Shown here in pieces: positions 18,174-50,636 of a DNA stretch of 64,000 bases. A program made the position numbers and the translations under genes. The notes beneath the pieces are model-generated. The model was not told where the DNA came from. It was given only the letters and a program-made list of their open reading frames with translations, and made no database searches. The stretch comes from Anthoceros angustus (taxonomy: Eukaryota; Plantae; Anthocerotophyta): positions 1,860,001 to 1,924,000 of the forward strand of contig MU008161.1 in the NCBI GenBank assembly GCA_010909165.1, in the 5' to 3' direction. How positions within the stretch are numbered: position 1 is the first letter of the stretch; every line of letters begins with the position of its first letter.

Positions 18174-18589
18174 TGAGCCTTTATAGAGAGGGAACACAAC
18201 ATTCCCATACAATATGGGTTATATGCACTAGGCACACTAGATACTAGCACACAAGCACACAAGAACACTTGCATATACCACACCCCACATGTAGGTGGGC
18301 TTGGCCTTATATAGTCCTAGCCTTGAATCCTACTGGTCACTTGACCTTGAATCCTACTGGTCACTTGACCTTGAATCCTATTGGTTACTTGACCTTGAGT
18401 CTTATTGGTCACTTGACCTTGAATCCTTCTTGTCACTTGACTTGCCCTTTACTTTTGGGCTTTCTAGAAGATACTTTCTAGAAGATGCATGACTTTCAAG
18501 TTTGTTATTTTTAGGGCACTCTTTATAACCTGCTTTTAGAGCACTCTTCATAACATATTTTGATATGTTGTAATAAATCACTTCTAACA
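18174..18589 (-). repeat. 3' LTR of Copia C, with a 24-bp repeat x5 (18321-18440)
   Basis: Matches 31011-31404; unit ccttgaatcctactggtcacttga. Confidence 0.9.
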
Positions 18590-21500
18590 CTCCCACTCAA
18601 CATATCAAAATTATTCTCTTAGGCCTAGCATCTTGCTAAATCTAGCATGTTTGTCTAAAGTTAAGGCTTGGTCAAAATATCTGCCGGCATGTCTCATGTT
18701 AGACAATACTATAGCTTTACCTCTTTTGACTTTACCTTCTCTCTTATAAAGTGATGTTTCACTTTGATGTTCTTGGCTAAGAAGATGCAACCTTGATTGT
18801 CGTTGAAGATTGTTGTTGCTTCCTTTTGCTTGAATCCCATCTCCTCTAGCAAGTTACGCAACCATATCGCCTCCATGATCAGAGCATGTTGCCATATATT
18901 CGCTCAGAGAGGATAGAGCCAGAGGTTGTCTCCTACTATTCCAAGAAATGGCTCCCCATTCGCATAACGCATATCCAATGAGACAGCGACTATCAACATC
19001 TCCCCGCCTCCGAATCACAATATCCTACCACTCGGACTTCACGATGCTCTGTTGATACACCAAATTCCAATGCTTTGTACCACTCAAGTACCTCATTATC
19101 CTCTTCACGGCTTGAAACTGTTGTCCGTGGTTAGCCATAAATTGACTTGCAACTCCCTCTCGCAATGTCGCCTTGTCCTGTAGATAAATAGGTGAGGCAT
19201 CCAACAACGATAGAGAGTTTTATCTACCTTCTCCTTCTCTTCTTGATTGTAGGACTCATCTCCTTTGAGAGCTTCTCATTAAGCACCATTGGTGTCTTCT
19301 GTGCTTGCACTTGCATTCCAAAGCGCTTTAAGACATTCTCAACATATGTCCTTTGGCTCAAAGAGATCTTCTTGTTAGCCCTATCTCTCATTACTTCTAT
19401 CCCTAGAAAGTAATGAAGTTCACCTAGATCCCTCATATCAAAACTATCATTAAGACTCTTCTTCATACTGTCTAAGAGTTCCAAATCATTGCAAACAAGG
19501 AGTTCTTCCAAGCTAGAGGTTTCAAGAAAACCAATGGAGATTAGAACATCTATGTGAAGAGAGTGCGAGAGTCCATAATGAATAACATACCAAGTAAGTG
19601 CAAATTGCTTAAGACCATGTATATCCCTTCCCCACCAGCCTTGCCTTGTATCGCTCTATGCTCCCATCAGCCTTGTGCTTGATCTTGAACACCCATTTGG
19701 ATCCTATGCACTTCCTTCCTTGGGGTAGAGGAGTGATTTCCCAAGTCTTGTTCTTAATAAGTGAGTTATACTCACTATCCAGGGCTTCTTTCCACTCCTT
19801 CGCCGCCCTTCCAAGGCTTCCTTCTGCTTATGCCTCAAAGATATGCCAACATAGCCTCTTCAGACTTGCATGCATTCATGGACTCCCAAATTTTTATGGT
19901 TTCCATCATTGTTTATCTCGATCCGGGTCAGCCTCCTCTTGACTCTTTGATCTCGCCTTCATCATCCTCGATATCCGGGCTTCCACCTTCTATCACCTTG
20001 TGGTAGAGGTTGCATGCTCAGAAGTTGAGCATGCTCAAGAGTAGGTTGCTCAAGAACCAAGTCTTGTGCTTCTTCACGCCCTTCAACTCCTTGATGACAA
20101 CTTGCGTTGCTCCCACTCCTTTGTTAGGTTCACTTCATGAAAAACAACATCCCTACTGAAAATGATTTTCTTGGTTGTAGGGTTGTATAATCTATACCCC
20201 TTTACCTCATTGAAGTATCCAAGCATGATGCACTGGATGCCTTTAGGATCCCACTTGATTCGGTTTTGCTTTGGTACATGAGCATAAACCTCAAAACAAA
20301 AGATCCTAAAATGACTCACGTTAGGTTTGACACCAGACCATGCTTCCTCCGAAGTCATTCCAGGTACAACCTTGGTTGGAACTCTATTCAAAACATAAGT
20401 TGCTATAGCAACAGCCTCTCCCCAAAAACGTACCTCCAACCCACTTTGATGGAGCATGCACTTCGCCGCCTCCACTAGACTCCTTAGCTTGCGCTCCGCC
20501 ACTCCATTTTGCTCCCAGATGAGGAATTGTTAGTTGCCTCCGAATGCCATGCTCCTTGCAAAAGCTTTTGAATTGAGAAGAGATGTATTCTCCTCCATTG
20601 TCACTCCTAAGTGTCTTGAGGCATTCTGGGTGCAAGCACGGTTAGGTAGACCTCATTATGTGGGGACGGACGCAACGTGGAAATATGTCCACATGTGGAC
20701 ATATTTACCTTCCAAAAACTCTCCTCGCTAGAATAATGATCGAAGTGATTCAAGTTTTTTTCCCAAAACTAAGAGCATGGCAACAAGTCCACAAAGAAAT
20801 GCTCGATCTTAAGGATATGATTTTGCATTTGGTATTTAATTATTTGATCATGGATGGACAAGTGAGCTTTGGATACAAAAGTGAGCACAAGACACACAAC
20901 CCAAGCTCATTTGAATTTCAAACGCAAACCGTCAACTGAACACAGAACACTAAAAGTGAGTCTTTGTCACACTGAAGTTGGAACTTGTTCAAATTTCAAA
21001 GTTTGGAATAAGCGGAATTTCAAAGTTGTACCGCAATTTCAAGAGCGTCAAGTGAACATGGAACACCGAAAGTGAAGCATGGTCACAAACAAGAGTAAAC
21101 TTGTTTGTATTTCAAAGTTTTGTCTAAGCGGATTTTCAAAAGATGGTAAGTACCCATGTTGGTGCGGCACTTGTCACCAATGAGAGCATAACGCCATCTT
21201 CACGCTGCGAGACCTTTCACCACTGCTTTGCGCTTGAGGCGCTCGGTGCCTGTGTGAACCATGTGCCCGATCTTGTGAGCTGCGAGAGGAGGAGGCGGGA
21301 AGGGAGCCCGTCGGCGGCAAGGGAATTGAATGGCTCCAGCAGCCTCCCTCTCGGGTGCACTTAGGAAAAGCAAAACACGCACTGGAAGCGCCGGTGGAGG
21401 GAAAAGCAAATTCGAGTTGCATCTTTGCGTGTGGAAGATGGAGCATCTTTGTGCGTAGCGGATGTTAGGCAAGAGGCGGGGAGCCCTTCGCATGGAGGAG

Positions 21501-22259
21501 GATTGTCACGGTGATAATCATACGGCGGAGGGTGGGTGTGAGGCTTCTCCGGATCGAAGAACCCTCAATGAGTGAGGAGGGAACTAGTCTACGAGGGCAA
21601 CAAAGACCAGTCCTCTTTCATCCACAGGCGGTCAAGGCGATTGGTACGGCAAAGGGGCGGATCTCACCCAGTCGTGATGGGGCCTGTGATGCACAATGTG
21701 GGCGTATTGCTCGAGAACTTGGCCACGTTTTCGGTTGTAGAACTGCCCACTTCAATTCGATAGCAAGGCTAAGGTGTTAGATGCTTTTTCCGGGCTTCGT
21801 GGCCTCAAGGAATTCTTCCGCTTCGTAGGGGTGAAGGCTCGAAGCCACATCCTCGCTCAAACATCGGCCATGAAAAGCTGGAGTGTACAAGCGTCGATCA
21901 CTTGAAGGCAAGACAAACCTTTATGAATATTGTGCTAACTAACGACGTGAGGCAAGCAATGGAGCCCGCCTTGGGCCGAGTCCTTGGGGTCAAGAGCGAG
22001 TTGTGGCACGCCATCTTCAAACCCGCGATTTTGCAAAGTGCACGAGGAGGCGGGTGTGGTGGGGACGGAAGGCTCGTTCGATTGTTTGCCCCAAGGGGTT
22101 AAGGCTTTTGCAATTTTGGGAGTCGGCCAAGGCCTTCCTCCAACTCCAAGGATGCGAGGCGGCTGGTGGCTCCTCTTGTCTTCCGCACGCACATCATCCA
22201 TTTCCTAGATACCTCTCGTGATCTGGGCCCACGCACTTTCTTTGCTTCCATCGGCGCGC

Positions 22260-23960
22260 ACACCGCCACCGGTGGTGAGCGCTCTCTGCCCAAAGGTGCT
22301 AGTCTATTCTTGCAATTGAACACCGCCACTAACCCTTTAACTTGTTTCACAAGCCTGGGATCATCACTATATGTGATGTAGTAGCTGTCACGCCACCGCA
22401 TGTTCGAGTTTCCTCCGTGGGCCGCTTGACCGCTTCATCTCTTTGCTTGCGCCATGCTTGCCCTGCTCTTGTTTAGTTGTTTTGCTCGGTCATTTGCCTG
22501 TGCTCGATCATTTGCTCGCTCCATGGTCATTTGCCTGCTATTGCTCATTTTCTCGCTCCGTGTCATTTGTACTGCACGCTCATTTGCTCGCCTTGTCATT
22601 TGCTCGCTCCTTGTCATTTGCTGCTCATTTGCCTGCTATTGCTCATTTGCCTGCTATTGCTCATTTGCTCGCTCCTTCTCTCGCTCGCTCCTCGGTCATT
22701 TGCTCGCTCATTTGCCTGTGCTCGATCATTGGCCCGGCTCCCGCCTTTGCCATGGCTATCGATCATTTGCTCGCAATGTTCATTTGAGCTCAGTTCACGC
22801 AATTTCTCTTTGCTTCCATGCGCTGCGCCATTGGTGGTGAGCGTCTCCTTGCCAGTGCAAGCTAGTCTATTCTTGCAATTGAACACCGCCACTAACCCTT
22901 TAACTTGTTTCACAAGCCCGTCGGGATCATCACTATATGTTGACAGTAGCTTGCCGTGCTACTGTCCTCTGCATGTTCGAGTTTCCTCCGTGGGCCGCTT
23001 GACCGCTTCATCTCTTTGCTTGCGCCATGCTTGCCCACAGCTCTTGTTTAGTTGCTCTTGCTCGGTCATTTGCCGGGCTCGATCATTGCTCGCTCCATGG
23101 TCATTTGCCGCTATTGCTCATTTTCTCGGCTCCGGTCATTTGTGCTCATTTTCTCGCTCCTTCTCTCGCTCCTTGTCATTTGCTCGCTCCTTGTCATTTG
23201 CTCGGCTCCGGTCATTTGCAGCTGTGCTCATTTGCTCGCTCCTTCTCATTCGCTCGGCTCTGGTCGGGTTCCAGCTCTGCTCATTTGCCCCGGCTCCCGA
23301 TCATTTGGCACGGCTCCGCTCATTTGCTGGCTCCCGATCATTTGCTCTCGTGCAATGTTCATTTCTTGTAGCTCAGTTCACGCAATTTCTTTCTTTGCTT
23401 CCATGCGCTGCGCCATTGGTGGTGAGCGTCTCCTTGCCAGTGCAAGCTAGTCTATTCTTGCAATTGAACACCGCCACTAACCCTTTAACTTGTTTCACAA
23501 GCCCGTCGGGATCATCACTATATGTTGACAGTAGCTTGCCGTGCTACTGTCCTCTGCATGTTCGAGTTTCCTCCGTGGGCCGCTTGACCGCTTCATCTCT
23601 TTGCTTGCGCCATGCTTGCCACAGCTCTTGTTTAGTTGCTCTTGCTCTCGGTCATTTGCCGGGCTCGATCATTGCTCGCTCCATGGTCATTTGCCTGCTA
23701 TTGCTCATTTTCTCGCTCCGGTCATTTGTGCTCGATCATTTGCTCGCCTTGTCATTTGCTCGCTCCTTGTCATTTGCTGCTCCTTGTCATTTGCTCCTTG
23801 TCATTTGCCTGCTATTGCTCATTTGCTGGCTCCTTCTCATTCGCCTGGCTCGGTCGGGTTCCCTGCTCGCTCATTTGCCACAGCTCGATCATTTGCTCGC
23901 TCATTTGCCTGTGCTCGATCATTTGCTCTCGTGCAATGTTCATTTGTAGCTCAGTTCACT
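22260..23960 (+). repeat. Three blocks of about 560-590 bp, each an anchor plus an A-poor TCATTTGCTCGC-type minisatellite
   Basis: Anchor ggtggtgagcg...gctagtctattcttgcaattgaacaccgccactaaccctttaac at about 22270, 22834, 23419. Confidence 0.92.
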
Positions 23961-23999
23961 CGAGGATATACAAGGCTCACACTTTGTGAGTGGGGCACT

Positions 24000-26320
24000 T
24001 CATGTGGCTCTGTGTCCTTTGTGCACGCCCACTCTATCTACTTTGTTTGGTCACATCTTGGTGTCCTTTTAGAGGAGATGTTACGAGCATACATTGTCGT
24101 GAGTGATGTGCGGAGTTTTTGCGCTTTTCAAAAGGAGAATCCGGATATCAAGATTGGCCAACGAGCATTCGGCTGAAGCCCTTCTTCATCAAATCCGCAA
24201 GAGAGAAATGTCATTGTTGCGGTACCATGTCGAGATGGCATTTTGAAAGAGGCCTGCACGCTCTGCGTGCCCATCAAAGGTGCACCTCGTGTGCACGTGT
24301 ACACTGGGGTGTGTGGAGAGGAACCCGAGGAGGGGACAAGTGCCACGCGATCGGAGATGTTTTCATCCGTCCGAGAGATGGTGCACTGCTTTATGCCCTA
24401 GAGCACCGGATGAGGATGCATAGGCGAAAATGTTTGCTTGGTAAATCACGCTGGAGTTTCCAAGTGGCCCTCTGTCCTAAGGAGGTTTCACAAGCATTTT
24501 GCCGGAGATGAAGTCAAGTGGCGGTGCTTGAATATCGGAAGGTGGGAGTGAATGAGGACGGAACCTCCAAGTCGAGAATAAAGCTAGTTCTGAAACCCAT
24601 CCGTCGATGATTGAATTTCTTAAGGATAAATTGATCGCTTTCATTTCACATGACTACGTCCAAGATGGCAAGCCACAGGTTTGAAGTGCATTGATTGGTT
24701 TCGAGGATGTGATAGTTTATTATGGACTTTTCGCGAACTATGCTTTTCAAGTTCGAATGAGATACAATCAATGCAATCGCATAGTGATCAAGTTACTATT
24801 CTAGTTCATGTTACATATATGCGGATGGGGCGGTGGTGGAGGAGGACCCTGTAATGTTCAAGTTTTACCACTTTTACATTAGTGATGACATGCAGCATGA
24901 CACTCTCTTTGTCCGGCATGCCCTTATGCTACATTGGGACTGGCTACTGTCAAATGGATACAAGAGTCCACGAGAGCATTGGATGTGGTGGATGGTGCGG
25001 CTTGATTTAAGGCTTGCAGGCCAAGCTATTTTGTGGCGAGGTACCCAAGTCTAACCGGAGGATGCGAGAATCTTTGTGGAGCTATTTTGGGTCGAGCCAC
25101 GGAAAGGGGAGCACGAGGCGGTGCCATATTAAAGAGGGCACTACGTCAAGAGTCACCTTCATCGACGAGGTCGCAGAGCCGCGGATGTTGTCGACTTCTG
25201 CGGTCCAAGATATCCAATGGGGCTGCATCCTCCTATGCAAGTGGAGAAAGGCAAAAGGGTTTTTGGTTGGTGGGAAAGAATGAAGTCAACCGCGGCAGGT
25301 GGGGTGCACCAATCCCGGGTTCTAAAGGCATGCATATATGGTGACTCGGATGCAACTAACCCTCGGCTCAAGATGCGGCATCTTGCGTTTTTTGCCGTGT
25401 GCATGGACAGGACCATGGAGCATGTGAGACAGTGCCCTATACAGCATATGGCATTGATTCGAGGCCGACAAGAGAGAGGACGTTGGTCCCACGCCAAGCA
25501 TCGCACCATTGTCGCTACATGGTCCAGATGGGCCACCCGATCCTGCTAATGGTGTTGCTAGTGAAGATGTCTCAAATTGCACCTCTTGGAGCTTGGAGAC
25601 AACTTTGTGGTGCGTGCATCCTCCTATGCAAGTGGAGAAAGGCAGTGCAAAGGGTTTTTGGTTGGTGGGAAAGAATGAAGTCAACCGCTGGGGTGTGCAC
25701 CAATCCGGGTTCTAAAGGCATGCACATATATGGTGACTCTGGATGCAACCAACCCTCGGCTCAAGATGCGGCATCTTGCGTGTTTTATCTTTATGTGCAT
25801 GGGGCGGTGACCATGGAGCATGTGAGATGCCCTATACAGCATATGGCATCTGGCCATTCGAGGCCGACAAGAGAGAGGACGTTCAATTCGACCAGACCGC
25901 ACCATTGTCGCTACATGCGGTTGGTCCAGATGGGCCACCGATCCCGCCGCTAATGGTGTTGCTAGTGAAGATGTCTCAAATTGCACCTCTTGGAGCTTGG
26001 AGACAACTTTGGTGCGTGCAAGATCCTGTGGACGAAGGTTCAACTTTTATTTGGCAAAGTGCACTGGTGTGCATGTGACCACGGAGCATTACTCCCCTCG
26101 AGGACAAAATTTCCTCCTGTGGGATAAGGTGGTTGTGGGCCAAGATTACCCGGGTTGAGCCGGATGGTTGTGTGTACACTTTGGATCATGAGGTCATGGA
26201 GGTCACCCTTCTTTCATCCCACGTGGAGACCGCAAGTTCCCACTTTTGGAACGCGTGGAAGGAGGCCGATTAGTGTATGTGCTTGACTCGGACACGGCCG
26301 AGTCCTTTAAGGAGCTTGTG
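24000..26320 (+). pseudogene. Sola2-like transposase, frameshifted
   Basis: Cross-frame motifs MDF(A)ENYAFQV.NEIQSM..HSDQVTILVH, HFYISDDMQHDTLFV, WMW(S)DGAA..FK, WSYFGSSHGKGEH(D)GAGAILKR. This is the DF(A/S)ENY / SDG / HGKGxxDG pattern I associate with Sola2. Confidence 0.72.
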
Positions 26321-27160
26321 AGGGAGGGAAACCAGAACCCATTTGTGTTTTCGTGAGTCGACTCTAAGGCCTCAATTGTACATATGCCGAACGAAATTGA
26401 AATGACCTTGACAACTTGTAAATACCATGGTCCGGTTGCTCAAGATGTGGCCATATTCACACTGTGATGACCCGCTCCACTCCGCTTGGGATCCGGAGCA
26501 CTTTGCTTGACTTGCGACCTTGCGGGTGACAATGCCCAACTTAAGCGCCTTTTAAAACCCCATCTCGTGGAAGACCTTGAAGAGCCAAAGATTGATGCAA
26601 GTGAGTCATGGCCATCGACGCGGGTGTCGTTGGGCAGGTGTGTCGTCAGACTGCCTCCACCAAGGCTTTCCACTCCTTGAATGTTTTGAACACTTTGAGC
26701 TTCTCCTTCAAAAGATATGTCCAACTCCTCCTTGTGAAGTTATCCACAAACTCTAGCATGTAGTGGGCTCCTCCATGGGTAGGGTTCTTCATATATTGGT
26801 CCACATACATCGGTGTGTACAAGCTCCAACGCCTTGGCTGCTCGACGCGCTCCAATCCTTAGAAGCTTGGCTTGGTGAAGCTTTCCCATTATGCACCCTT
26901 GGCACAATTGCGGCTCACCAATCTCTTTTAAATCCAAGTCGGTCACCATTTGTTGATTCTTCATCATCTTGATGTTGTCCACTCCAATGTGCCCCAAGCG
27001 TTGATGCCACAAATCTACTGACCCAGTGCTCTTAGGCGAGCTTGACACAAATGTGCAAGCTTGTTGATCACCTACTAAGCACACAACTTGTAGAGATTGC
27101 CTTCCCGAACACCTCGAGCTATCACCTTGACATTAGGTGATTCCGGTTGCTCGGGTTGGA

Positions 27161-29440
27161 TGCGACATGACACTCTCTTTGTCCGGCATGCCCTTATGCT
27201 ACATTGGGGACTCTTGTCAAATGGATACAAGAGTCCACGAGAGCATTGGATGTGGTGGATGGTGCGGCTTGATTTAAGGCTTGCACCAAGCTATTTTGTG
27301 GCGAGGTACCCAAGTCTAACCGGAGGATGCGAGAATCTTTGTGGAGCTATTTTGGGTCGAGCCACGGAAAGGGGAGCACGAGGCGGTGCCATATTAAAGA
27401 GGGCACTACGTCAAGAGTCACCTTCATCGACGAGGTCGCAGAGCCGCGGATGTTGTCGACTTCTGCGGTCCAAGATATCCAATGGGGCTGCATCCTCCTA
27501 TGCAAGTGGAGAAAGGCAAAAGGGTTTTTGGTTGGTGGGAAAGAATGAAGTCAACCGCGGCAGGTGGGGTGCACCAATCCCGGGTTCTAAAGGCATGCAT
27601 ATATGGTGACTCGGATGCAACTAACCCTCGGCTCAAGATGCGGCATCTTGCGTTTTTGCCGTGTGCATGGACAGGACCATGGAGCATGTGAGACAGTGCC
27701 CTATACAGCATATGGCATTGATTCGAGGCCGACAAGAGAGAGGACGTTGGTCCCACGCCAAGCATCGCACCATTGTCGCTACATGGTCCAGATGGGCCAC
27801 CCGATCCTGCTAATGGTGTTGCTAGTGAAGATGTCTCAAATTGCACCTCTTGGAGCTTGGAGACAACTTTGTGGTGCGTGCATCCTCCTATGCAAGTGGA
27901 GAAAGGCAGTGCAAAGGGTTTTTGGTTGGTGGGAAAGAATGAAGTCAACCGCTGGGGTGTGCACCAATCCGGGTTCTAAAGGCATGCACATATATGGTGA
28001 CTCTGGATGCAACCAACCCTCGGCTCAAGATGCGGCATCTTGCGTGTTTTATCTTTATGTGCATGGGGCGGTGACCATGGAGCATGTGAGGAGTGCCCTA
28101 TACAGCATATGGCATTGATTACTCGAGGCGGACGGTAGGGGGCGTTGGTGGTCGGATGGTGCAACAGAATTTAAGGCTTGCACCATTGTCGCTACATGCG
28201 GTTGGTCCAGATGGGCCGCCTGATCCTGCTGCTAATGGTGTTGCTAGTGAAGATGTCTCTGAAATTGCAGACCTCTTGGAGCTTGGAGACAACTTTGTGG
28301 TGCGTGCAGATCCCAGGGACGAAGGTTCAACTTTTTATTTGGCAAAGTGCACTGTTGCAGTGCATGTGACCACGGAGCACATTACCTGTCCCTGGAGCGG
28401 ACAAAATTTCCTCCCAGGGGATAAGGTGGTTGTGGGCCAGTACTACTCCGGGGTTGAGCCGGATGGTTGTGTGTACACTTTGGATCATGAGGCTGCGGAG
28501 GTCACCCTTCTTTCATCCTACGTGGAGACCTGCAAGTTCCCACTTTTGGAACGCGTGGAAGGAGGCCGATTAGTGTATGTGACTCGGACACGGTCGAGTC
28601 CTTTAAGGAGCTTGTGAGGGAGGGAAACCAGAACCCATTTGTGTTTTCGTAGTCTGACTCTAAGGCCTCAATTGTACATATGCCAAACCTGAAATTGAAA
28701 TGACCTTGACGAACTTGTAAATACCATGGTCCGTTGCTCAAGATGTGGCCATATTCACACTGTGATGACCCGCTCCACTCGCTTGGGATCCGGAGCACTT
28801 TGCTTGACTTGCGACCTTGCGGGTGACAATGCCCAACTTAAGCGCCTTTTAAAACCCCATCTCGTGGAAGACCTTGGAAGAGCCAAAGATTGATGCAAGT
28901 GAGTCATGGCCACGACGTCGGTCTGCCGGTGTCATTGTCTTGTGTACCGGTGTCATTGCTTCCTCCACCAAGGCTTTCCTCCTTGAATGTTTTGAACACT
29001 TTGAGCTTCTCCTTCAAAGATATGTCCAACTCCTCCTTGTGAAGTCATCCACAAACTCTAGAATGTAGTGGGCTCCTCCATGGGTAGGGTTCTTCATTGG
29101 TCCACACATCGGTGTGTACAAGCTCCAACGCCTTTGCTCGGACGCGCTCCAATCCTTGGGAACTTGGTTGGTGAAGCTTTCCCATGCACCCTTGGCACAA
29201 TCGCTCACCAATCTCTTTCAAATCCAAGCGGTCACCATTTGTTGATTCTTCATCATCTTGATGTTGTCCACTCCAATGTGCCCCAAGCGTTGATGCCACA
29301 AATCTACTGACCCAGTGCTCTTAGGCGAGCTTGACACAAATGTGCAAGCTTGTTGATCACCTGGAAGCACACAACTTGTAGAGATTGCCTTCCGAACACC
29401 TCGAGCTATCACCTTGACATTAGGTGATTCCGGTTGCTCG
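27161..29440. repeat. Tandem duplicate (about 2.27 kb) of 24890-27160: transposase 3' half plus Copia integrase segment
   Basis: At about 27160, Copia ccggttgctcgggttggat runs into transposase gcgacatgacactctc; both units also contain an internal duplication of about 395 bp. Confidence 0.88.
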
Positions 29441-30659
29441 GGTTGGATCGACATCCTCGAGTTGAACACAATCTCATTCGGTCGTGATTCTTGCTCGAAA
29501 GAAGATTCTTCAAGACCGGGCACATGGTGCACATCCTTGATTGTACCTTTGGATGGTCCTCCAGGGAGTTGAACTTTAATCACACCTCTTCATTTGATCT
29601 CGTGTGACCTAGTGTCTCCAAGCGCCACTTTATGCCCCGCCGGCATTTCTTCATAGCTTGAGAACCAAGGCCAGTTGTAGGTGACGTGTTGAGATGCTCC
29701 AGAGCCGAGGTACAAACTCTCATCCTTCTTTGATGGGAGTTGTCGTACTCTTTCTACCGTTGAGATAGCGAAAAGATGTTCTTCCTTCTCACTCACTTGA
29801 TTAGCTTGTGACTCCTTTCCCTTCTTCTTCAGGTCAGTCAACCTTGTCCTACAATCCTTGGCATAGTGATTAGGCTTTTTGCAATAATGGCAAATACCCC
29901 ACACCTTTTTCTTCGCACCTTTCTCCTTCGATCCTTCTTCAGAGTTGGCTTCTGAAGTCTTCCCACGTGTTGTTCCCTTCTTTGAGAAGAGCACCGAGTC
30001 TCCATTCTCTTCTTTCTTGAAGGAATTCTCTAGCTCCTCTTGTAGGAGCAACCCAACCACCTCATCCAACGTTGGTGGTTTGTCGCTTAGATGCATCGCT
30101 ACCGCCGTTCTGAAGGCCAACACAAATTGCTGGTATGCGGATGGTAGGCTACTCAGCAACACCACGATAACCTTTCTTTCAGAAGGTTTGATGTTCGCCG
30201 CCTTCATTTGATCTACCAAGTTCTTCAACTTGTTGACGTGTTGTTAAATGGTGTCACCCTTGATCATCTTGAAGTTGACAAATTGTTGCTCCAACAGCAT
30301 CTCATTCACCAAGCTCTTCTTCTCATACGTGTTGCAAAGGGTCGTCCACGCCGCTTTAGATGTTGCACACTCACTCAATTGAGAGAGTATGTCATCGGAC
30401 ACATCGAGGAGAATCGTTGCCAACGCTCGTCCATCTTTCTCGGTGTCCGCTTTGATGGGTGTTTGCTGAGGCCATTGTCGACAAACTTCCATAGTCCTCA
30501 GTCAATAGCATCTTCAGATTCAACTTCCACAATATGAAGTTCGTGGCTCCAAACTTCTCCACTATACATGTCTCCATGCTTGTTGACGCCATGCCTAGTT
30601 TCCCTACAATTGATCTTGAAGACCAAAGCACCTCACTCTCATGCACTACAAGGATTATT

Positions 30660-30920
30660 GCACACAAGTTCTCACAAGCACAAGGCGAAGAACTATGCAA
30701 TTGGACTTGACTCAAGCATCTAGATTGCACACAAGTTCTCACAAGCATAAGGCTAAGAACTATGCAATTGGACTTGACTCAAGCATCTAGATTGCACACA
30801 AGTTCTCACAAGCACAAGTCTAAGAACTATGCAATTGGACTTGGCTCGAGGATCTAGATAATAGTGCAATAAGAATTCTGTTAGGCTCTGCAAAACACAC
30901 AAGTTCTCACAAGCACAAGA
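30660..30920. repeat. 67-bp tandem repeat x3 plus a partial copy, in the Copia C leader
   Basis: gcacacaagttctcacaagca...gaactatgcaattggacttgactcaagcatctagatt at 30660, 30727, 30794. Confidence 0.92.
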
Positions 30921-31010
30921 CTAAATTTCGTCCTATGGGAATGACTCAAGATGGTAGATAATAGTACAATGGGACTCTATGAGGCTCCCCACCATAGATC
31001 TGATAAGCGC

Positions 31011-31404
31011 TGAGCCTTTATACAAACTAAACCCTAAACATTCGCATTCAATATGGGTTATATGCACTAGGCACCCTGGATACTAGCACACAAGCACGCA
31101 AGAACACTTGCACACACCACACCCCACATGTAGGTGGGCTTGGCTTTATTTAGTCCTAGCCTTGAATCCTACTGGTCACTTGACCTTGAATCCTATTGGT
31201 TACTTGACCTTGAGTCCTATTGGTCACTTGACCTTGAATCCTTCTTGTCACTTGACTTGCCATTTACTTTTGGGCTTTCTAGAAGATACTTTCTCGAAGA
31301 TGCATGACTTTCAAGTTTATTATTTTTAGGGCACTCTCCATAACATGCTTTTAGAGCACTCTTCATAACATATTTTGATATGTTGTAATAAATCACTTCT
31401 AACA
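31011..31404 (-). repeat. 5' LTR of Copia C, with a 24-bp repeat x4 (31160-31255)
   Basis: Matches 18174-18589. Confidence 0.9.
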
Positions 31405-31590
31405 CGGGAAGCCAGCACCATGACCTCACACCGTTTGCTCATTCCAGCCTCGACCCTACCTGGCCGGTGCATCCCCTAGCTGCTACTTATCATCTTGCCC
31501 ACATTTGGAAGCATGAAATAGCCACTGGCTTGCTCACCATCTGCCTGTCCACCCTTAACCCAGTCATCCGCCGGCTGTTAAATGCTCACA

Positions 31591-32095
31591 CCCGGCAGCG
31601 TTGCTCAAGGTTGGGTTGGAAGCAGTGTCAGCGGCACTTGATGGGTGGGAGATGCAGCGTCTCAATGAGCTAGCTGACGAGCTCATCGCCTGTGGAGACG
31701 AGGAGGAGCCCATGGTGGATGTGTGCCAGGAGATGCGTGAGCTTACACAACAAGTGTCACCGGCCGTGGTCATCGCCAATGAGCTTCAAAGCTCGGAGTC
31801 ATTCACAGAGGGGCAGGATTGCACTCTGTTGATACTTATCTGGGCCTTCACTTGGGTTGAAATCTTGCTTTTGGAGCATACCATGCTTGGGGATCGTCGC
31901 CCAGAGGAGATGCACACCATCAGTTCCAAGTGGGAAACCTACACTTGGAGCATTGAAACGGACGAAAAAGACACTCGACGGTTTCCGACGAGTAGCACTG
32001 TTCGCCTGCGGCCAAGAAAGCGAGGCTGTCGAAGATTTTGTAGCGCCAGACTGCTGGGAAGGGTTTGAAGCTTGTTTTCTGTGTGTTGTCACCTC
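31591..32095 (+). pseudogene. Inverted, diverged copy of the N-terminal part of the TPR-CHAT gene (source about 37440-37952)
   Basis: Translation LK.GLEAVSAALDGW.MQRLNELADELIACGDEEEPMVDVCQEMREL matches ORF 36422-38188. Confidence 0.9.
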
Positions 32096-32245
32096 CTATG
32101 TGTGCTGAGAAGCTAATGAACGTCGTGCATTTGGCAGTAGTCCTGTCGATGCAGGAGGTGCGCAACTGTTGCTCGATCTTCATATTGGTGTACTAAGGCC
32201 AATTCCCCAACGGAAAGCGGTGAAATGTGATCGCTTAACAAAAAA
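32096..32245 (+). repeat. Inverted copy of about 46680-46825
   Basis: catttggcagtagtcctgtcgatgcag...gcggtgaaatgtgatcgcttaacaaaaaa is the reverse complement of sequence at 46680-46825. Confidence 0.85.
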
Positions 32246-32447: not shown

Positions 32448-33976
32448 TCAGGTATGCAGTTTGGAGATGGACGAAGCGAGCTCAGCCTGGCCTCTCCGCA
32501 TCTGTGCTGGTAAGCAGACTGTGGGCAAGCCAGTTACTACAAACGGAGCTAATTCGTGGAGGGTGTACTTCCCAGTCTGGTGCATCTTGATCATGGCGGA
32601 CTGCAAGGCCGAGCACGCGTCCTCACCTTGGCTTAGTGCCTCGTAAAACAGGGGCATGAGATGCCCAGTGGCCCTATCATCTACACGCCATTGAGCCAGA
32701 ACAGAGCAGGGAACTCCCCTATTCATGAATGCCCGACCGAAGTTGAGGACATCGAGGACGTTTAGATTAAGGGTTACTCCTACAGCCGTGCTGCAGGCGC
32801 TGAGGACGACCATGTAAGCAAACCACGTCGGACCTGAGAACATGACATCATCGCAGTGCAAGCTACTCCCGACATCTGAGCTGCGTAATGGAAGTCCAGA
32901 AAGAAACTCCAAGCCTTCCACTGCCCTATCCGCCTCTCGCTGCAACATGTGGTGCTCAGAAAGCCCAGAAGGTAGGGCATCCATATCTGAGGAGACCGAA
33001 GCCTCAGGTTCTTCATAGCTCTCGTCATCTGAAGACGCAGCTTCGTCCCTCGTTACCTTAAGCTTGCCCTGTGCTGCTCGGCGTCTCCTTCTGGTTTCGG
33101 TAGCTTGGGCCAAACTGAGAGTCCCGTGATCGGCTTCCTTGCCACCAGAGCCGTGAGCTGCGATATGTATGAAGGCTTGGCTGCATTGGGTGCCACTTCC
33201 CACACCTGAGGGCTTCTTCACCCACTCCCACAGCCTTTCTACCGTGGCATCACTACCCAACAGCTTCACAATCTCATGCTCAGGTTGACAAAAATCAAAT
33301 AGATCGCATATGGCCTCCACCTCCTTCCGACTTCCCGGCAACGGACGATCTCGATAAGGCAAGTATTGAGGATCTCCCAAGGCCACTGCAGCCCCTGCAC
33401 CCGCAAGCAATGTCCTCTCCTGGAGTGACTCGTACCAGAACTGACACAAGTCGAGCATTAGGAAAGACGGTGTGACGGCCAGTTTCACCTCTTGGAAAAG
33501 ATAGCAGCCAGAGACCCTGTTCCTAAGGATGCTGAAAGGCACGTCCTGGACACGACCAACCGCGGAGATAACCAACTTGCGATGCGGGGTCCAATTCTGG
33601 TCCCGGATGAAGTTGTGGAAGAGCGGCCTGATGAGCAGGTCGTACAACGTCTCCAGAGCAATCTGACAGCCATCATTCTCAAGCTTCCTCTCAAGACCAG
33701 CATCATAAATTTCCTGGACATTTTCTAGTATACTGTCCGAGTGAATCCAATCCAACCTGTGGCACGAGGCCACACCTTCATCCTGCACCACAATGCACAC
33801 GTACGGCACCCCTGCAGACGCTGACAACGCCGAGTCTAGACATGCGAACAGCACAAACACTGTACCAGGACCGCAGGCCCGGTGGGCTCGTTTGATTCCT
33901 TCCCAGTCGATGTGGGGCAGTTTGTAATTCCTAGCACCCTCGAGAGAGAGCAAAGCTTGGCGAGCAATCTCACCAT
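32448..33976 (-). CDS. CHAT (caspase HetF associated with TPRs) protease exon
   Basis: LYDLLIRP, LVISAVGRVQDVPFSIL, ALGDP, LPGSRKEVEAI, LLGSDAT, FIHIAAHG (His codon 33153-33155), VVLSAC (Cys codon 32793-32795), FGRAF..RGV.CSVLAQWRVDDRAT..LM..FY..L..G.D...ALQSAM. Confidence 0.9.
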
Positions 33977-36271
33977 CTGCCGCTCCTACGTTTCGCCCCA
34001 AAAGCTTAGAGACGGTGTCCGCCAGGAGATGGACGTGAAATAGACAGAAGTAGGGAGCCACGAATCGGCAAAGACTTGCACCTTCTTACCATCTCCCAAG
34101 TCCTTCACTTGGTAGCGGCGCGCTGTAGCACTGCAAAGTGACAATGCGTCACAAGAATCCTTGTAGGATTCCCAGAATGTGTCCAGTACAGCAGCTGGGT
34201 GTCGGTGCAGGCACAGGAAAGGGCATGAACGTAGCAGGTCCCGAGAATCCACAAACAGCCCACGCATTCCGAAAGAACGAATGGGCAAGAGCTGTAGCTT
34301 GCAAGGACTCCCCGTGCGCAACAATAAATGCCTGAAGCCTCTACCCTGCCCTGGTGAACCACTTCTACCACATCCGAATTGATTGTTCTATGACAAATTT
34401 CGAAAATCTCCCCTCTAACCACGGTTGGCGAATTGTGCTGTCAACAGAATCGGCACCGAACTTGGCAAGACATGTGTCAAATACCTCCAGTCCCTCCTCG
34501 ACCTGTCCCCAATGGGTGATCAATTGCTCTCCTCGCAGCCGAAGCCAGTAACATGCATACCGGGCTTGGAAATAGCTCTGCACGCCGTCTAACTGGTCCA
34601 TGACCTCTTGCCCAACCTCAGGTACTAATCCAATGAGTTGACAACCTGTGCGGTGACTGTGCCGGGCCAAGAATTCCAGCAGCTGCAACTTCAGAAATTC
34701 AATACTGGGGTGCGGCACTGGGAACTCGAATCTGGGTTGAAGATCTATCTGTTGAATGTGTTTAAGTGCGTTGTCAGAAGCCTGATAACTCAGCTCAATC
34801 CGACCGAACTGTCTCAAGGACGACGCCTGAAGCAGGAGGACCCAGGCTCTGACAAGAGGCCAGTGCTCGTGGTTGCGCGGGACAGCTCTTTCAGCACGCT
34901 CAATCCAACCTGTGGCACGAGGCCACACCTTCATCCTGCACCACAATGCACACGTCCGGCACCCCTGCAGACGCTGACAACCTCGAGTCCAGACATGCGA
35001 ACAGCACAAACACTGCACCAGGACCGCAGGCCCGGTGGGCTCGTTTGATTCCTTCCCAGTCGATGTGGGGCAGTTTGTAATTCCTAGCACCCTCGAGAGA
35101 GAGCAAAGCTTGGCGAGCAATATCACCATCTGCCGCTCCTACGTTTCGCCCCAAAAGCTTAGAGACGGTGTCCGCCAGGAGATGGACGTGAAATAGACAG
35201 AAGTAGGGAGCCACGAATCGGCAAAGACTTGCACCTTCTTACCATCTCCCAAGTCCTTCACTTGGTAGCGGCGCGCTGTAGCACTGCAAAGTGACAATGC
35301 GTCACAAGAATCCTTGTAGGATTCCCAGAATGTGTCCAGTACAGCAGCTGGGTGTCGGTGCAGGCACAGGAAAGGGCATGAACGTAGCAGGTCCCGAGAA
35401 TCCACAAACAGCCCACGCATTCCGAAAGAACGAATGGGCAAGAGCTGTAGCTTGCAAGGACTCCCCGTGCGCAACAATAAATGCCTGAAGCCTCTACCCT
35501 GCCCTGGTGAACCACTTCTACCACATCCGAATTGATTGTTCTATGACAAATTTTCGAAAATCTCCCCTCTAACCACGGTTGGCGAATTGTGCTGTCAACA
35601 GAATCGGCACCGAACTTGGCAAGACATGTGTCAAATACCTCCAGTCCCTCCTCGACCTGTCCCCAATGGGTGATCAATTGCTCTCCTCGCAGCCGAAGCC
35701 AGTAACATGCATACCGGGCTTGGAAATAGCTCTGCACGCCGTCTAACTGGTCCATGACCTCTTGCCCAACCTCAGGTACTAATCCAATGAGTTGACAACC
35801 TGTGCGGTGACTGTGCCGGGCCAAGAATTCCAGCAGCTGCAACTTCAGAAATTCAATACTGGGGTGCGGCACTGGGAACTCGAATCTGGGTTGAAGATCT
35901 ATCTGTTGAATGTGTTTAAGTGCGTTGTCAGAAGCCTGATAACTCAGCTCAATCCGACCGAACTGTCTCAAGGACGACGCCTGAAGCAGGAGGACCCAGG
36001 CTCTGACAAGAGGCCAGTGCTCGTGGTTGCGCGGGACAGCTCTTTCAGCACGCTCAATCCAATTCAGACACCTGTTTCCTATCTGGCTCAAGTTAGCGTA
36101 CCCGGCACTAAGCCTTCCTGGCTTCCTACGACCGGGGTCCCACATCTCGGAGATGGCAACACACAGAAAACAAGCTTCAAACCCTTCCAGTAGTCTGGCG
36201 CTACATAATTTTCGAGAGCCTCCCTTTCTTGGCCGCAGGAGAACAGTGCTACTCGTCGGAGACCGTCGAGT
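33748..36271 (-). repeat. Two extra staggered copies (about 1154 and 1288 bp) of the central TPR-CHAT segment
   Basis: Same sequence at about 33845-34900, 34985-36060 and 36270-37345; junction microhomologies CAATCCAA (34901-34908) and CGAGT (36267-36271). Confidence 0.92.
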
Positions 36272-36525
36272 CCAGACATGCGAACAGCACAAACACTGCA
36301 CCAGGACCGCAGGCCCGGTGGGCTCGTTCGATTCCTTCCCAGTCGATGTGGGGCAGTTTGTAATTCCTAGCACCCTCGAGAGAGAGCAAAGCTTGGCGAG
36401 CAATATCACCATCTGCCGCTCCTACGTTTCGCCCCAAAAGCTTAGAGACGGTGTCCGCCAGGAGATGGACGTGAAATAGACAGAAGTAGGGAGCCACGAA
36501 TCGGCAAAGACTTGCACCTTCTTAC

Positions 36526-38176
36526 CATCTCCCAAGTTCTTCACTTGGTAGTGGCGCTCTGTAGCACTGCAAAGTGACAATGCGGCACAAGTATCCCTGT
36601 AGGATTCCCAGAATGTGTCCAGTACAGCAGCGCTGGGTGTCGGTGCAGGCACAGGAAAGGGCATGAACGTAGCAGGTCCCGAGAATCCACAAACAGCCCA
36701 CGCATTCCGAAAGAACGAATGGGCAAGAGCTGTAGCTTGCAAGGACTCCCCGTGCGCAACAATAAATGCCTGAAGCCTCTCTACCCTGCCCTGGTGAACC
36801 ACTTCTACCACATCCGAATTGATTGTTCTATGACAAATTTCGAAAATCTCCCCCTCTAACCACGGTTGGCGAATTGTGCTGTCAACAGAATCGGCACCGA
36901 ACTTGGCAAGACATGTGTCAAATACCTCCAGTCCCTCCTCGACCTGTCCCCAATGGGTGATCAATTGCTCTCCTCGCAGCCGAAGCCAGTAACATGCATA
37001 CCGGGCTTGGAAATAGCTCTGCACGCCGTCTAACTGGTCCATGACCTCTTGCCCAACCTCAGGTACTAATCCAATGAGTTGACAACCTGTGCGGTGACTG
37101 TGCCGGGCCAAGAATTCCAGCAGCTGCAACTTCAGAAATTCAATACTGGGGTGCGGCACTGGGAACTCGAATCTGGGTTGAAGATCTATCTGTTGAATGT
37201 GTTTAAGTGCGTTGTCAGAAGCCTGATAACTCAGCTCAATCCGACCGAACTGTCTCAAGGACGACGCCTGAAGCAGGAGGACCCAGGCTCTGACAAGAGG
37301 CCAGTGCTCGTGGTTGCGCGGGACAGCTCTTTCAGCACGCTCAATCCAATTCAGACACCTGTTTCCTATCTGGCTCAAGTTAGCGTACCCGGCACTAAGC
37401 CTTCCTGGCTTCCTACGACCGGGGTCCCACATCTCGGAGATGGCAACACACAGAAAACAAGCTTCAAACCCTTTCCAGTAGTCTGGCGCTACATAATTTT
37501 CGAGAGCCTCCCTTTCTTGGCCGCAGGAGAACAGTGCTACTCGTCGGAGACCGTCGAGTGCCCCCTTCGTCCGGTGCAATGCTCTAGGGCAGGACAAGTG
37601 CAGGGTTTCCCACCTGGAGCTGATAGCGTGCATCTCCTCTGGGCTACAATCCCCAAGCATGGCATCCTCCAGAAGCAAGGTTTCAACCCAAGTGAAGGCC
37701 CAAATGAGTATCAACAGAGTGCAATCCTGCGCCTCTGTGAATGACTCCGAACTTTGAAGCTCATTGGCGGTGACCACGGCCTCCATCACTCGTTGTATAA
37801 GCTCACGCATCTCCTGGCACACATCCACCATGGGCTCCTCCTCGTCTCCACAGGCGATGAGCTCGTCAGCTAGCTCATTGAGACGCTGCATCGCCCACCC
37901 ATCAAGTGCCGCTGACACTGCTTCCAACCCAAGCTTGAGCAACGCTGCCGGGGGCCGCACAATCCACCTGTCCCGACTCAGTTCGCCAAACTTGTCCCAA
38001 CCATTCGAGAAATTCCTCCAAAGATTGGAGGCTGCATGGTAGTCCTGTTCGCGGAAAGAGACAGCGACGGATCGACGGAAGCGTTCGGCATTTCCTGCCG
38101 CGTCCGCCGATGCAGCTTCTCCGCCGGATGAAGAAGCAGGTGATTCCACATCGGCAGACATCCCGGTGGCGGCCAT
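36526..38176 (-). CDS. Predicted first exon of the TPR-CHAT gene: alpha-helical region with TPR-like segments
   Basis: Open for 550 codons from ATG 38176; TPR-like LLLQASSLRQFGRIELSYQASDNALKHI and LRGEQLITHWGQVEEGLEVFDTCLAKF; ends at donor G|GTAAG (36525). Confidence 0.7.
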
Positions 38177-38599
38177 CCTGCAGTGCAATTCAGGTCTGCC
38201 TTGCGCTATCGCTGCGGGATATGTAGAGCTCTGTCATAGCTCCGTGATCGAAGAAGAGAAAGATTTCCATAGTGAGATGGTGTTCCAAGTCAGACACGCG
38301 TTCCCGGCTGACCCAGTCCCGGCCCGAGCGCGGACAAGGGATGAGGCAAGGTTTCACCTTGTGAAGCAAAGACATAAGGCGCTTTCCACCTTTGTGAGAG
38401 CTTGAATATCTTGGCATCAAGCACCGTAGCGTCGGGGAGTACGGAAAAACATATTTAATACAAGAAGTGGCTTTAGTTTAGAGGTAGGAATTCCGAAGTG
38501 GAGCTGTGAAGACTTGAGGTCGGGTTCAACTAGGTGGTCATGACCGCCTTGTCAGGGATTGGAGAGCTGAATTTTATGGGTGTGCGAGCTTGAATTGTA

Positions 38600-39100
38600 G
38601 CAAAAGTTAAGATACCTTGTTTTGGTGTTAGACTCTTCTCTATCCCTACATGAATTGATATTCGGAGCAAGGTGGCTGCAACAATAGCTGCAACTTGCCA
38701 TGATTTTGACAAGAATTCAGAAGCATGTAGGCAGAAGTGGAAATTGATTTATAAGAACTACAAGGTGGACAAGGCTCACAATGCCATATCAGGCAACGAC
38801 AGGTTTGAAAAATGTGCATGGTTTGACATTGTTGACCTCTACATGCATAACCGTGCTCACGTTGTGTGTGAGGCTCATGCCTCCTCACACAAGAGGTCGA
38901 GTGTGGACAATTCTTCGATGAGCGGAGTCAGCAATGAAGACATGGCAATAAAGAGGAGGATTGGTCAAGATAATGCATCTGATGCTATCAATCTCTTGAG
39001 TTCCATGTCCCAGAAATTGGAAGCCCTAGAGAAAAAGAAAGTGGCATTGTTAGAGAGTTTAGTGGCCACTCTGTCCACAGGATTGAAAAATCAGCCTTAG
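38600..39100 (+). CDS. Myb/SANT (trihelix-type) DNA-binding protein of a Harbinger element, 5' end degraded
   Basis: KVAATI.....DKNSEACRQKWKLIYKNYK.DK.HN.ISGNDR..KCAWFDIVD, followed by a coiled coil; converges on a transposase. Confidence 0.8.
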
Positions 39101-40702: not shown

Positions 40703-43171
40703 AGTGTTGATTTTTAGTGGTTTGAAAAAATTTGTAAATCATCCCGGTATCTAGGCGTAAAGTCATGAATATTATTTTTGAAAATCATTTGTTGGTTGAT
40801 GTTATATTCCCACATTCGCTTTGTATACAACATGTAAAACCTTTTGGCCTTACTCTATGTGCCCCTTCCGATGACTTGCGGTGGATCTCTTTGATTGGTG
40901 CGCCAAATGTCCGCTCATTCGAGTTTGATGCATGCGTATAGATGCATAGGCCTTGGTTTCTAGATGAGCTACATTTTCCAAAATTCGACATGTATGATGG
41001 TGGTTTCTAATGGCCAACCTTTTGAAGGCGACAATGTTTCACAATGTTTTGTAGAGAAGCAAGAAAATAAATAGAATAGATGATTTTTCCTTGAGTAATG
41101 AAAGCACATCGGATGCGATCGAACACAAGCATAAGAGAGCATCACGCCTGCGAGCCCTAGTGAGAGCCAGTGAGTATCGAAGAAAGAGGGTTGTCGGTGG
41201 GGTTTTGACCAAATGGCTGAGTATTTCAGTGAGGCTCTGAAGGAGGACCTGTCTATACCCACTGTGACGCCCACTACAGCTGTGGCGCAGCTAGGTGTTC
41301 AGAGACGAACTATAGCCAAGCTTCGCCAGAGATTTTGAATTTAAGATCGACTTGCTCCATGTGCCACCCATGGATAGATTAAGGTTGAAAGCGGTACGGA
41401 CTTGACAAGAAGAAATGTAAGCTATGAAGAGTTTGATCAAGAGCGGTTGAGGAGGCCTCACCATCCTTTACCTTGTCCAATTCTGCAGGCCTTTCTGCGA
41501 GATCTAAGTGCGGCTTATCTCGACACGGAGGGGCAGGTCGGTATGCACCGTGCAGGATTGCTCGAATCACGGGGTTTGAAAAGAGAATTGATGTGAGTGT
41601 TGGTGCGGTGGCAAGTGTGCACAAGCAACTTGAACGAAAGTGCTTGCCTACACAAGTATTGACGCAACCCTCTCCAAACCCGGTGTATTGCACCTCTTTG
41701 GAGTATAAGTCGCGGACGTTGTGCACTCCGACTCTTTGGAGCATAAGTCGCGATCATCCGGCCACTTGGTTCAAAGGTGTGTCCGTCATTTGTGCGGACG
41801 GTGGGCACATTAGGTCTTCCTTGGGCTCGGATGCATGGGCATGGGTTCGCAAATCAAAGCGTGAAATGAGACATGTGCATTTCTGGATGGTTGGGGCCAA
41901 ATGGGGTTCGGAGACAAACCCCTATGCTGAGAAACACTGTTTTGCCTGCATCACATTTTTGTCCAAGCACACATCTGGTGAACAGGTTCCAATCATTAAG
42001 ACTGCCTGCCCATCCATAGTCGTAATCCCACACAAGACAATTTGCAGTCACGGTTAATTGAAGAAGTTGAGAGTAGAACCCTTTTCTATTATAGTAATCC
42101 CCCTTGTTTCTCCGAGGAGCAATACTGGGGATGTGACTCCCATCGACGACTCCAACCACATACGGGATACCTTGCAATTCAAGGAACTTTGCTGCATATG
42201 CAACCATTTTGCTCTTTCCAGGCCACATGATGTGGGTATCGTGCAATTTGGAAACCAGGGCTCTGCAGAATTCCAAAGTAGCATTACAAACTGCAGTTGT
42301 GTTGTATCCATAGCAGTTGCTAAGAGTTTGAAGAGTGTCTCCAGTGGCCAGCCTCCTAAGGGCCATCGCAACTCTTGCATCCACAGGAATGGCTTTCCGG
42401 AATGTGGTGTCTTGCCTGAACACCAAAGGGCCAATTTCAGCGCACAGATACTGGAAGGTGGCTTTGCTTACTTGACAACGCTCCCTGAACATCTCGTCTG
42501 TGTAAGACCCAAGAAGTGATTGATGTGCAAACCCTTGGTTTTGTTTCACACACCATGTTGATCGTCGTTTCTTTTTTCTCCCACTAGACTTCAACACTTC
42601 GTGAGGCAAAGCCACTGCTACAGCAGTTATGAATGTGCAGAGAGTCAAAGAGCAAATTTCAAGAGCACACAATACACCCAAAGCAAGTAAAATTTTCTCC
42701 CGACGGCTGTCATTTGACATTGCTAGATTTATGTCCTCATAGCTGTCCCTGGCTATCATTGGAGGTACCTGCAGCATTGCTGGATTTGTGTCCTCACGGT
42801 TATCCAAGGCCATCACTTCAGGTACTTGTGAAGCCATCTCACTCTCATGCCCCTCCATGGTGTGGCGAGCTCAATTGCCTTGTGAAGACCTTATGCAAAG
42901 GCAACGTGTGCAGAGGACAGGCGTGAACGGGTGTGGAGTGATAAGCTTGCGGCCATGCCCCTCTAAATGCAGGGATTATGAAGAGTTTACCATTGTGAAG
43001 CACCGTAACCTCATGATGTAAATAGTTTATCTTATACCATGAAGAGAGGAACAGGATGTCAGAAAATCAAGTTAACCGGTCAAGTGTACAAGAAAATGAC
43101 AATCACATCCTTGTCACCATGTGTATACTGCAGCCGGCCGTGATCGGTGCCGTGGCGGCGGCCCGGTCATA

Positions 43172-50606: not shown

Positions 50607-50636
50607 TTGTATCCTGCATCTGTAGCTTGCTTGAAG

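Follow-up and report, generated by a model that had tools for sequence, protein, structure and literature searches.

CHAT-fold proteases are switchable cutters: Craspase and SAVED-CHAT act in bacterial defence, and separase acts in the segregation of chromosomes. CHAT domains are most abundant in bacteria. Separase is the one relative of this fold in seed plants named in an earlier note on the DNA described here. We analyzed a 64-kb stretch of the Anthoceros angustus genome (contig MU008161.1, positions 1,860,001–1,924,000; hereafter the window, with positions numbered from its first nucleotide), the minus strand of which carries a CHAT gene between nt. 32448 and 38176. On sequence and modelled structure, the locus is a genuine CHAT (clan CD) cysteine protease gene with an intact predicted catalytic dyad. 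We consider it a genuine member of an unstudied land-plant CHAT protease clade and, with a probability of roughly 55% for this reading as a whole, most likely a recently disabled or low-output copy in a multi-copy family. The coordinates of all features are collected in Table 1.

The assignment to CHAT is carried by the last exon. Its 508 amino acid (aa) product scored 126.3 bits with the Pfam CHAT model (PF12770; cut-off 24; E 2.2e-36), and CHAT was the sole Pfam model reported at E ≤ 0.1. The two motifs whose His and Cys residues the earlier note had read as intact, HIAAHG (H-x3-H-G) and LSAC (L-S-A-C), both fall in conserved columns; in an alignment of 68 sequences (67 relatives), Cys394 is invariant and His270 and His274 are at least 90% conserved. 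These residues correspond to Cys945, His821 and His825 of the 1059-aa protein discussed below, with the His codon at nt. 33153–33155 and the Cys codon at nt. 32793–32795. Between the His and Cys residues lies a 115-aa charged insert, which is disordered and of low confidence in the model. Using the same alignment, AlphaFold2 (AF2) gave a model of the exon product with a predicted local distance difference test score (pLDDT) of 82.6 and a predicted template modelling score (pTM) of 0.84, in which a caspase-hemoglobinase fold with pseudo-protease and active lobes is seen. The earlier claim of an intron-containing CHAT protease gene in a plant nuclear genome thus stands, including its proposed check by the PF12770 hidden Markov model (HMM).

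Comparison of the AF2 model with solved structures (Foldseek and VIA-align) placed Csx29/TPR-CHAT first (Z 29.0, root-mean-square deviation 3.1 Å over 336 residues), where TPR denotes the tetratricopeptide repeat, followed by separase protease domains (Z 26.1), gingipains (Z ~21), and DdvA (Z ~20). SAVED-CHAT was also listed, and lower matches were chains of the ciliary central apparatus; the latter proteins, from Chlamydomonas and mouse (PDB 7n6g_1N, 7sqc_R0, and 9ijj_A/B), have a CHAT-like two-lobed fold and reach Z 16–18 to our model. A profile search of PDB sequences returned the DdvA CHAT domain as the best match (E 1.8e-20), then the CHAT domain of Craspase, SAVED-CHAT, and separase (E ~5e-4). 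Orthology to separase was considered and rejected, given the separase chains at E ~5e-4 against 1.8e-20 for the DdvA CHAT domain and the Pfam scan that reported CHAT only. PADLOC and NCBIfam models gave no match to either the exon-1 product or the CHAT-exon product.

Upstream of the CHAT exon lies a second long coding stretch. The earlier note had listed two minus-strand open reading frames (ORFs) in different frames, one of 588 aa (nt. 36422–38188) and one of 537 aa (nt. 32448–34061), together with a 113-nt phase-1 intron at three positions and an alternative acceptor 9 nt earlier, and all of these were recovered. The donor GGAGATG/GTAAG (last exon base 36526) and the acceptor ...GCGGCAG/ATGG occur three times in identical context, and the second AG, 9 nt upstream of the acceptor, likewise keeps the frame. 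When nt. 38176–36526 are joined to nt. 33976–32448 (1651 + 1529 = 3180 nt), a 1059-aa ORF results, with GAT (Asp) as the junction codon (...NLGD-D-GEIARQ). Chance alone would not be expected to leave 550 and 508 codons open (an estimated p of ~1e-10 for 550 stop-free codons). The 550-codon exon-1 ORF is real coding sequence, and the frame-restoring intron is real. The specific join that the earlier note proposed, through the intron copy at nt. 36413–36525, does not connect the two long ORFs; it leads into a CHAT fragment of 51 codons followed by a stop at nt. 36249–36251.

The threefold occurrence of the intron reflects an internal triplication of the gene. Copy A, which reaches down to ~36262, has exon 1 in full and the intron, and breaks off ~50 codons into the CHAT exon. 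Copy B (36271 to ~34901) restarts in the middle of exon 1 and continues through the intron into the first ~75 CHAT-exon codons, while copy C, from 34908 on, begins again at the position matching nt. 37349 and proceeds through the intron into the whole CHAT exon. The two duplication junctions differ and are staggered, each lying on 6–8 nt of microhomology (ACTCGA at junction 1, TTGGATTG at junction 2). By self-BLAST, the copies are 98.8% (A/B), 99.4% (B/C), and 98.6% (A/C) identical. Compared with copy A, copies B and C have three slip-type indels and six clustered substitutions in common, and also differ from each other. The arrangement fits an origin in two successive tandem duplications, first A/B0 and then B/C inside B0, in which microhomology would have mediated the triplication of the end of exon 1, the 113-nt intron, and the start of the CHAT exon. 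The six substitutions lie within the last 60 nt of exon 1 (nt. 36538–36597 versus 35255–35314 and 34102–34161) and all change an amino acid, which suggests either clustered mutation or a short tract of gene conversion. In the ~750 nt ahead of this cluster, the copies show zero substitutions and differ only by slip-type indels in short runs.

That last feature speaks for the triplication being an assembly artefact, in which case the true gene would be a simple and intact two-exon gene with one 113-nt intron and nothing unusual within its family. We regard this as unlikely, as distinct, staggered junctions on microhomology are typical of real replication-based duplication, and as the indels and substitutions common to B and C relative to A, together with the differences between B and C, describe nested descent and not random error. 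From the comparison of the copies we infer that the duplications are real and, at ~1% divergence, recent.

The consequences of the triplication for the gene product are considerable. Given that the donors are identical to one another, as are the acceptors, splicing between the nearest sites yields a frame-shifted 604-aa product lacking the protease. Frame arithmetic on the coordinates places duplication junction 1 out of frame whatever small indels are assumed; nearest-site splicing models end at 604–626 aa without a CHAT domain, and the unspliced reading ends at 584 aa. The sole model that yields 1059 aa runs from the donor of copy A (36526) to the acceptor of copy C (33976), removing a 2549-nt intron past two partial copies; nearer to donor A lie two decoy acceptors, at 36412 and 35129, that do not differ from the productive one. 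As assembled, the gene therefore fails as conventionally spliced, the full-length ORF not being obtained from the nearest sites. Of the 1059-aa protein in the earlier note, the arithmetic (3180 nt) holds, whereas the product itself would depend on this unusual 2549-nt splice.

The N-terminal region encoded by exon 1 was described in the earlier note as TPR-like, a description that gained no support. The 550-aa product showed no TPR nor any other Pfam match at E ≤ 0.1, a homologue search of 5.8 billion clusters gave none at E ≤ 1e-3 among proteins of 302–962 aa, and a phmmer search of PDB sequences gave nothing below E 0.2. BLASTP comparison with the corresponding regions of the three best relatives produced chance-level matches only, and profile-profile comparison (hhalign) with an alignment of the N-terminal regions of seven relatives gave a probability of 0.05%. 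A single-sequence AF2 model was all-alpha, with ~23 helices, at low confidence (pLDDT 46). The exon-1 product is best described, on this model, as a helical region of unknown fold, and "TPR-like" as a guess. An older, inverted partial copy of exon 1 lies just past the 3′ end of the gene (Table 1) and has 1-nt and 10-nt gaps, while the gene copy remains open. We count an open exon 1 beside a gapped copy of ~10% divergence as an indication that the gene functioned in the past. The inverted repeat so formed, which aligns in one block of 349 nt (93% identity) and another of 157 nt (88%), brackets the CHAT exon and the duplicated copies, and a read-through transcript could fold back as double-stranded RNA.

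Relatives of the protein were found among other land plants. An exhaustive phmmer search of 1.84 billion representatives gave 11,082 matches, none above 50% identity and three below E 1e-30, and the best named matches were "hypothetical" or "CHAT domain-containing" proteins of land plants. The nearest named relatives, at 35–40% identity, come from Riccia sorocarpa (KAL3683022.1, KAL3689802.1), Ceratodon purpureus (KAG0608914.1), and Adiantum capillus-veneris (KAI5077259.1), with Physcomitrium patens (PNR44035.1), Calypogeia fissa (CAM6104038.1), and Selaginella moellendorffii (XP_002992467.1) further out; compared with the named land-plant proteins as a group, identity is 23–35%, within the CHAT part only. 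A maximum-likelihood tree built from 68 sequences over 390 columns placed every named land-plant CHAT sequence sampled in one 17-tip clade with an ultrafast bootstrap (UFBoot) of 99 and a Shimodaira–Hasegawa-like approximate likelihood ratio test (SH-aLRT) value of 95, 8 of the 17 tips being without an organism name. Within it, the window protein belongs to an 8-tip subclade (99/94) with moss and fern sequences. As liverwort and moss sequences stand in the clade beside those of a lycophyte and a fern, the family predates the split between bryophytes and vascular plants. No position common to the intron here and those of the Riccia, Ceratodon, and Adiantum genes was demonstrable.

The same tree bears on the possible horizontal origin raised in the earlier note. 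The named sequences outside the plant clade are from a cyanobacterium, a myxobacterium, a Thermoanaerobaculia metagenome-assembled genome, and a sea anemone, and one might suppose, with CHAT domains commonest in bacteria and bacterial sequences among these outsiders, that the gene was recently gained from a bacterium by horizontal transfer and has acquired its intron since. The protein is, however, nested among liverwort, moss, lycophyte, and fern sequences; no sequence beyond the plant clade reaches 30% identity to it, and a single-protein search of 185,579 prokaryotic species genomes gave no close relative. Recent transfer was excluded on these two grounds, tree placement and the prokaryotic genome search, and we give it next to no weight; any transfer would thus predate the diversification of land plants.

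The N-terminal modules vary across the family, with a phloem-protein-2 (PP2) lectin domain in the top match (P0011) and a ubiquitin-interacting motif (UIM) and weak TPR in others. P0011 (L001:527–4171; 1214 aa), from a transcript-like contig of an environmental or transcriptome assembly, joins the PP2 lectin domain, a helical region, and CHAT in one chain and looks like a possible sugar-sensing protease. A full-text search of ~8.4 million papers and preprints found no literature on plant CHAT proteins, and the family is annotated in databases yet appears functionally unstudied. A different role could be envisaged from the structural matches, in which the family would serve the sperm flagellum, as structural or as regulatory components, and would not be immune proteases; this would explain its putative restriction to plants with swimming sperm and its putative absence from seed plants. 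The CHAT model does match ciliary central apparatus chains (7n6g_1N, Z 17.6; 9ijj_B, Z 16.4), and all named plant relatives are from lineages with flagellate sperm. The PDB profile search, however, returned DdvA, Craspase CHAT, SAVED-CHAT, and separase but no ciliary chains, the family is multi-copy with members no more than 35–40% identical to this protein, and the N-terminal regions are unrelated between members, unlike those of conserved axonemal proteins; we consider this role very unlikely.

Weighing these results, real duplications at ~1% divergence mean that the locus is probably freshly disabled or weakly productive. Three points count against this. The dominant transcript could be the one with the long splice, and the Adiantum capillus-veneris relative (CM043948.1), a gene of ~15 kb with one intron of ~10 kb, is a precedent in the family. 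Both long ORFs are still open, which suits continued function as well as recent breakage. Finally, the substitutions between exon 1 and its inverted copy are distributed 17/14/10 over codon positions 1/2/3, with no third-position excess; there is thus no visible purifying selection on the exon-1 region, which fits either a fast-diversifying domain or decay.

The most direct competitor holds that the gene is fully functional, the 2549-nt stretch being excised as a single intron, whether constitutively or in a regulated way, to give a 1059-aa ligand-gated immunity or cell-death sensor-protease. The A-to-C splice does produce an uninterrupted ORF with an intact dyad, both ORFs are open while the intervening copies carry frameshifts, and variable N-terminal modules with many paralogues are as found in immune-type families. 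Set against this are the identical decoy acceptors closer to the donor and the ~1% divergence of the copies, at which open ORFs say little on continued function. No gasdermin-like, RPW8-like, or other executioner or substrate gene was found among flanking ORFs of at least 120–150 aa, though small or multi-exon genes could escape, and PADLOC matched nothing. No close transcript-derived protein was found in 15 billion sequences, although the source genome seems to be absent there. Even the PORR protein encoded in the window has a best database match of only 59% identity (best named matches, lycophyte at 51% and ferns at 48–49%), so the lack of a near-identical CHAT match says nothing on expression. 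We view full function as possible but not probable, and favour a recently disabled or low-output copy, from which nearest-site splicing would give the 604-aa product without protease and the 1059-aa enzyme would arise only via the 2549-nt splice.

For the family as a whole, a gated mechanism may be proposed by analogy with Csx29, SAVED-CHAT, and separase. A helical N-terminal region would hold the protease in check or regulate it, and once a ligand or partner was bound, the enzyme would cut a substrate in trans; in the protein described here, a putatively fast-evolving all-alpha N-terminal region without detectable relatives would precede the protease. Tentatively, and with considerable doubt, non-seed land plants may retain an ancient, diversifying CHAT family with N-terminal sensors as ligand-gated immune or cell-death proteases, lost in seed plants, with this locus live either via the long splice or through a 568-aa CHAT-only product from an ATG at 34267. 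This ATG, in copy C, is in frame with donor C, and nt. 34090–34267 joined to nt. 32448–33976 (minus strand) could encode the 568-aa protein. Such a candidate, from an internally initiated transcript, would comprise the CHAT exon product (pseudo-protease and protease) with almost no N-terminal region.

Table 1. Coordinates of the CHAT gene, its internal copies, and neighbouring features in the window.
Feature	Position (nt.)	Strand	Description
CHAT gene, exon 1	36526–38176	−	ATG at 38176; 550 codons + 1 nt; ends at donor G/GTAAG
CHAT exon (last exon)	32448–33976	−	2 nt + 508 codons + stop; pseudo-protease and protease domain
Intron copy A	36413–36525	−	113 nt, GT-AG, phase 1
Intron copy B	35130–35242	−	113 nt; splice sites identical to copies A and C
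Intron copy C	33977–34089	−	113 nt; only acceptor with a complete CHAT exon after it
Fragment A′ of CHAT exon	36262–36412	−	First ~50 codons; ends out of frame at duplication junction 1; self-BLAST, tblastn
Copy B of exon 1, 3′ part	35243–36271	−	Equivalent to 37559–36526; 98.8% identical to copy A; slip-type 1–2-nt indels
Fragment B′ of CHAT exon	34901–35129	−	First ~75 codons; ends at duplication junction 2
Copy C of exon 1, 3′ part	34090–34908	−	Equivalent to 37349–36526; 99.4% identical to copy B
Older inverted partial copy of exon 1	31591–32104	+	Equivalent to 37428–37952; ~90% identical; just past the 3′ end of the gene
Copia-type long terminal repeat (LTR) retrotransposon, ~13 kb	18198–31405		LTRs 18198–18590 and 31037–31405; ends just below the CHAT gene
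Harbinger/PIF-like remnants	38672–39100; 41854–42858		Weak Myb/SANT-like ORF; DDE_Tnp_4; directly upstream of the CHAT start
PORR-domain gene, apparently intronless	50607–52004		Pfam E 1e-102
eIF3a exon	55058–56473		

The CHAT gene lies in what its PORR, eIF3a, copia, and Harbinger neighbours mark as plant nuclear DNA, and transposons flank it on both sides. The flanking ORFs match only copia, Harbinger, Myb-like, DEAD, PORR, or eIF3a proteins, or nothing, the DEAD-box match being to a fragment in the window. Rfam gave no match in the window at gathering thresholds. The LTRs of the copia-type element are 92–97% identical, with a 24-nt tandem repeat at nt. 31160–31279, and internal fragments of gag, integrase, and an SH3-like domain are present. 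Within the retrotransposon region, a segment of 670 nt or more is present twice (nt. 25021–25953 and 27286–28118), the copies being spaced by 2264–2265 nt and identical over two compared 300-nt blocks. At nt. 22454–24176, Cys/Ser/Leu-rich low-complexity ORFs (up to 490 aa) without a Pfam match are based on a 585-nt direct repeat, the surrounding stretch being strongly T-skewed, and are probably repeat DNA and not a gene.

As an old land-plant CHAT clade with varying N-terminal regions, the family represents an unstudied group of proteases that could bear on the control of cell death or immunity in early land plants. The locus described here matters less for function than as an example of a member just after microhomology-mediated internal duplication, and it carries a warning that intact ORFs can hide a gene that is not expressible by ordinary splicing.

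Among described systems, DdvA, an anti-sigma factor of Myxococcus (PDB 8rot), gives the strongest sequence-profile match of any solved structure (E 1.8e-20), and both DdvA and SAVED-CHAT (PDB 8tl0) are signal-regulated CHAT proteases. DdvA is a bacterial transmembrane protein and SAVED-CHAT senses nucleotides, whereas the protein described here has neither a transmembrane nor a SAVED module. Csx29, of the type III-E CRISPR Craspase, resembles it in both lobes of the predicted model and in the (here predicted) helical region that precedes CHAT at the N-terminal side, but sequence identity is ~13% and no TPR is detectable in the window protein. The association of Csx29-type systems with Cas7-11/gRAMP and Csx30 has no counterpart in the window, where the host is eukaryotic, the flanks are transposons, and PADLOC gave no match. 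Separase (C50) has the same two-lobed pseudo-protease and protease fold (Z ~26) with a large helical region in front; it differs in its weak profile match (E ~5e-4) and in length, the window protein being much shorter and branching with the plant CHAT clade. Compared with the other land-plant CHAT proteins, the 550-aa N-terminal region is unrelated in sequence to theirs, and the locus here is internally triplicated. What is held in common with them is a C-terminal CHAT domain with the His/Cys dyad, a long insert between the two residues in some members, long N-terminal regions in which any TPR matches are weak and below threshold, and multiple introns.

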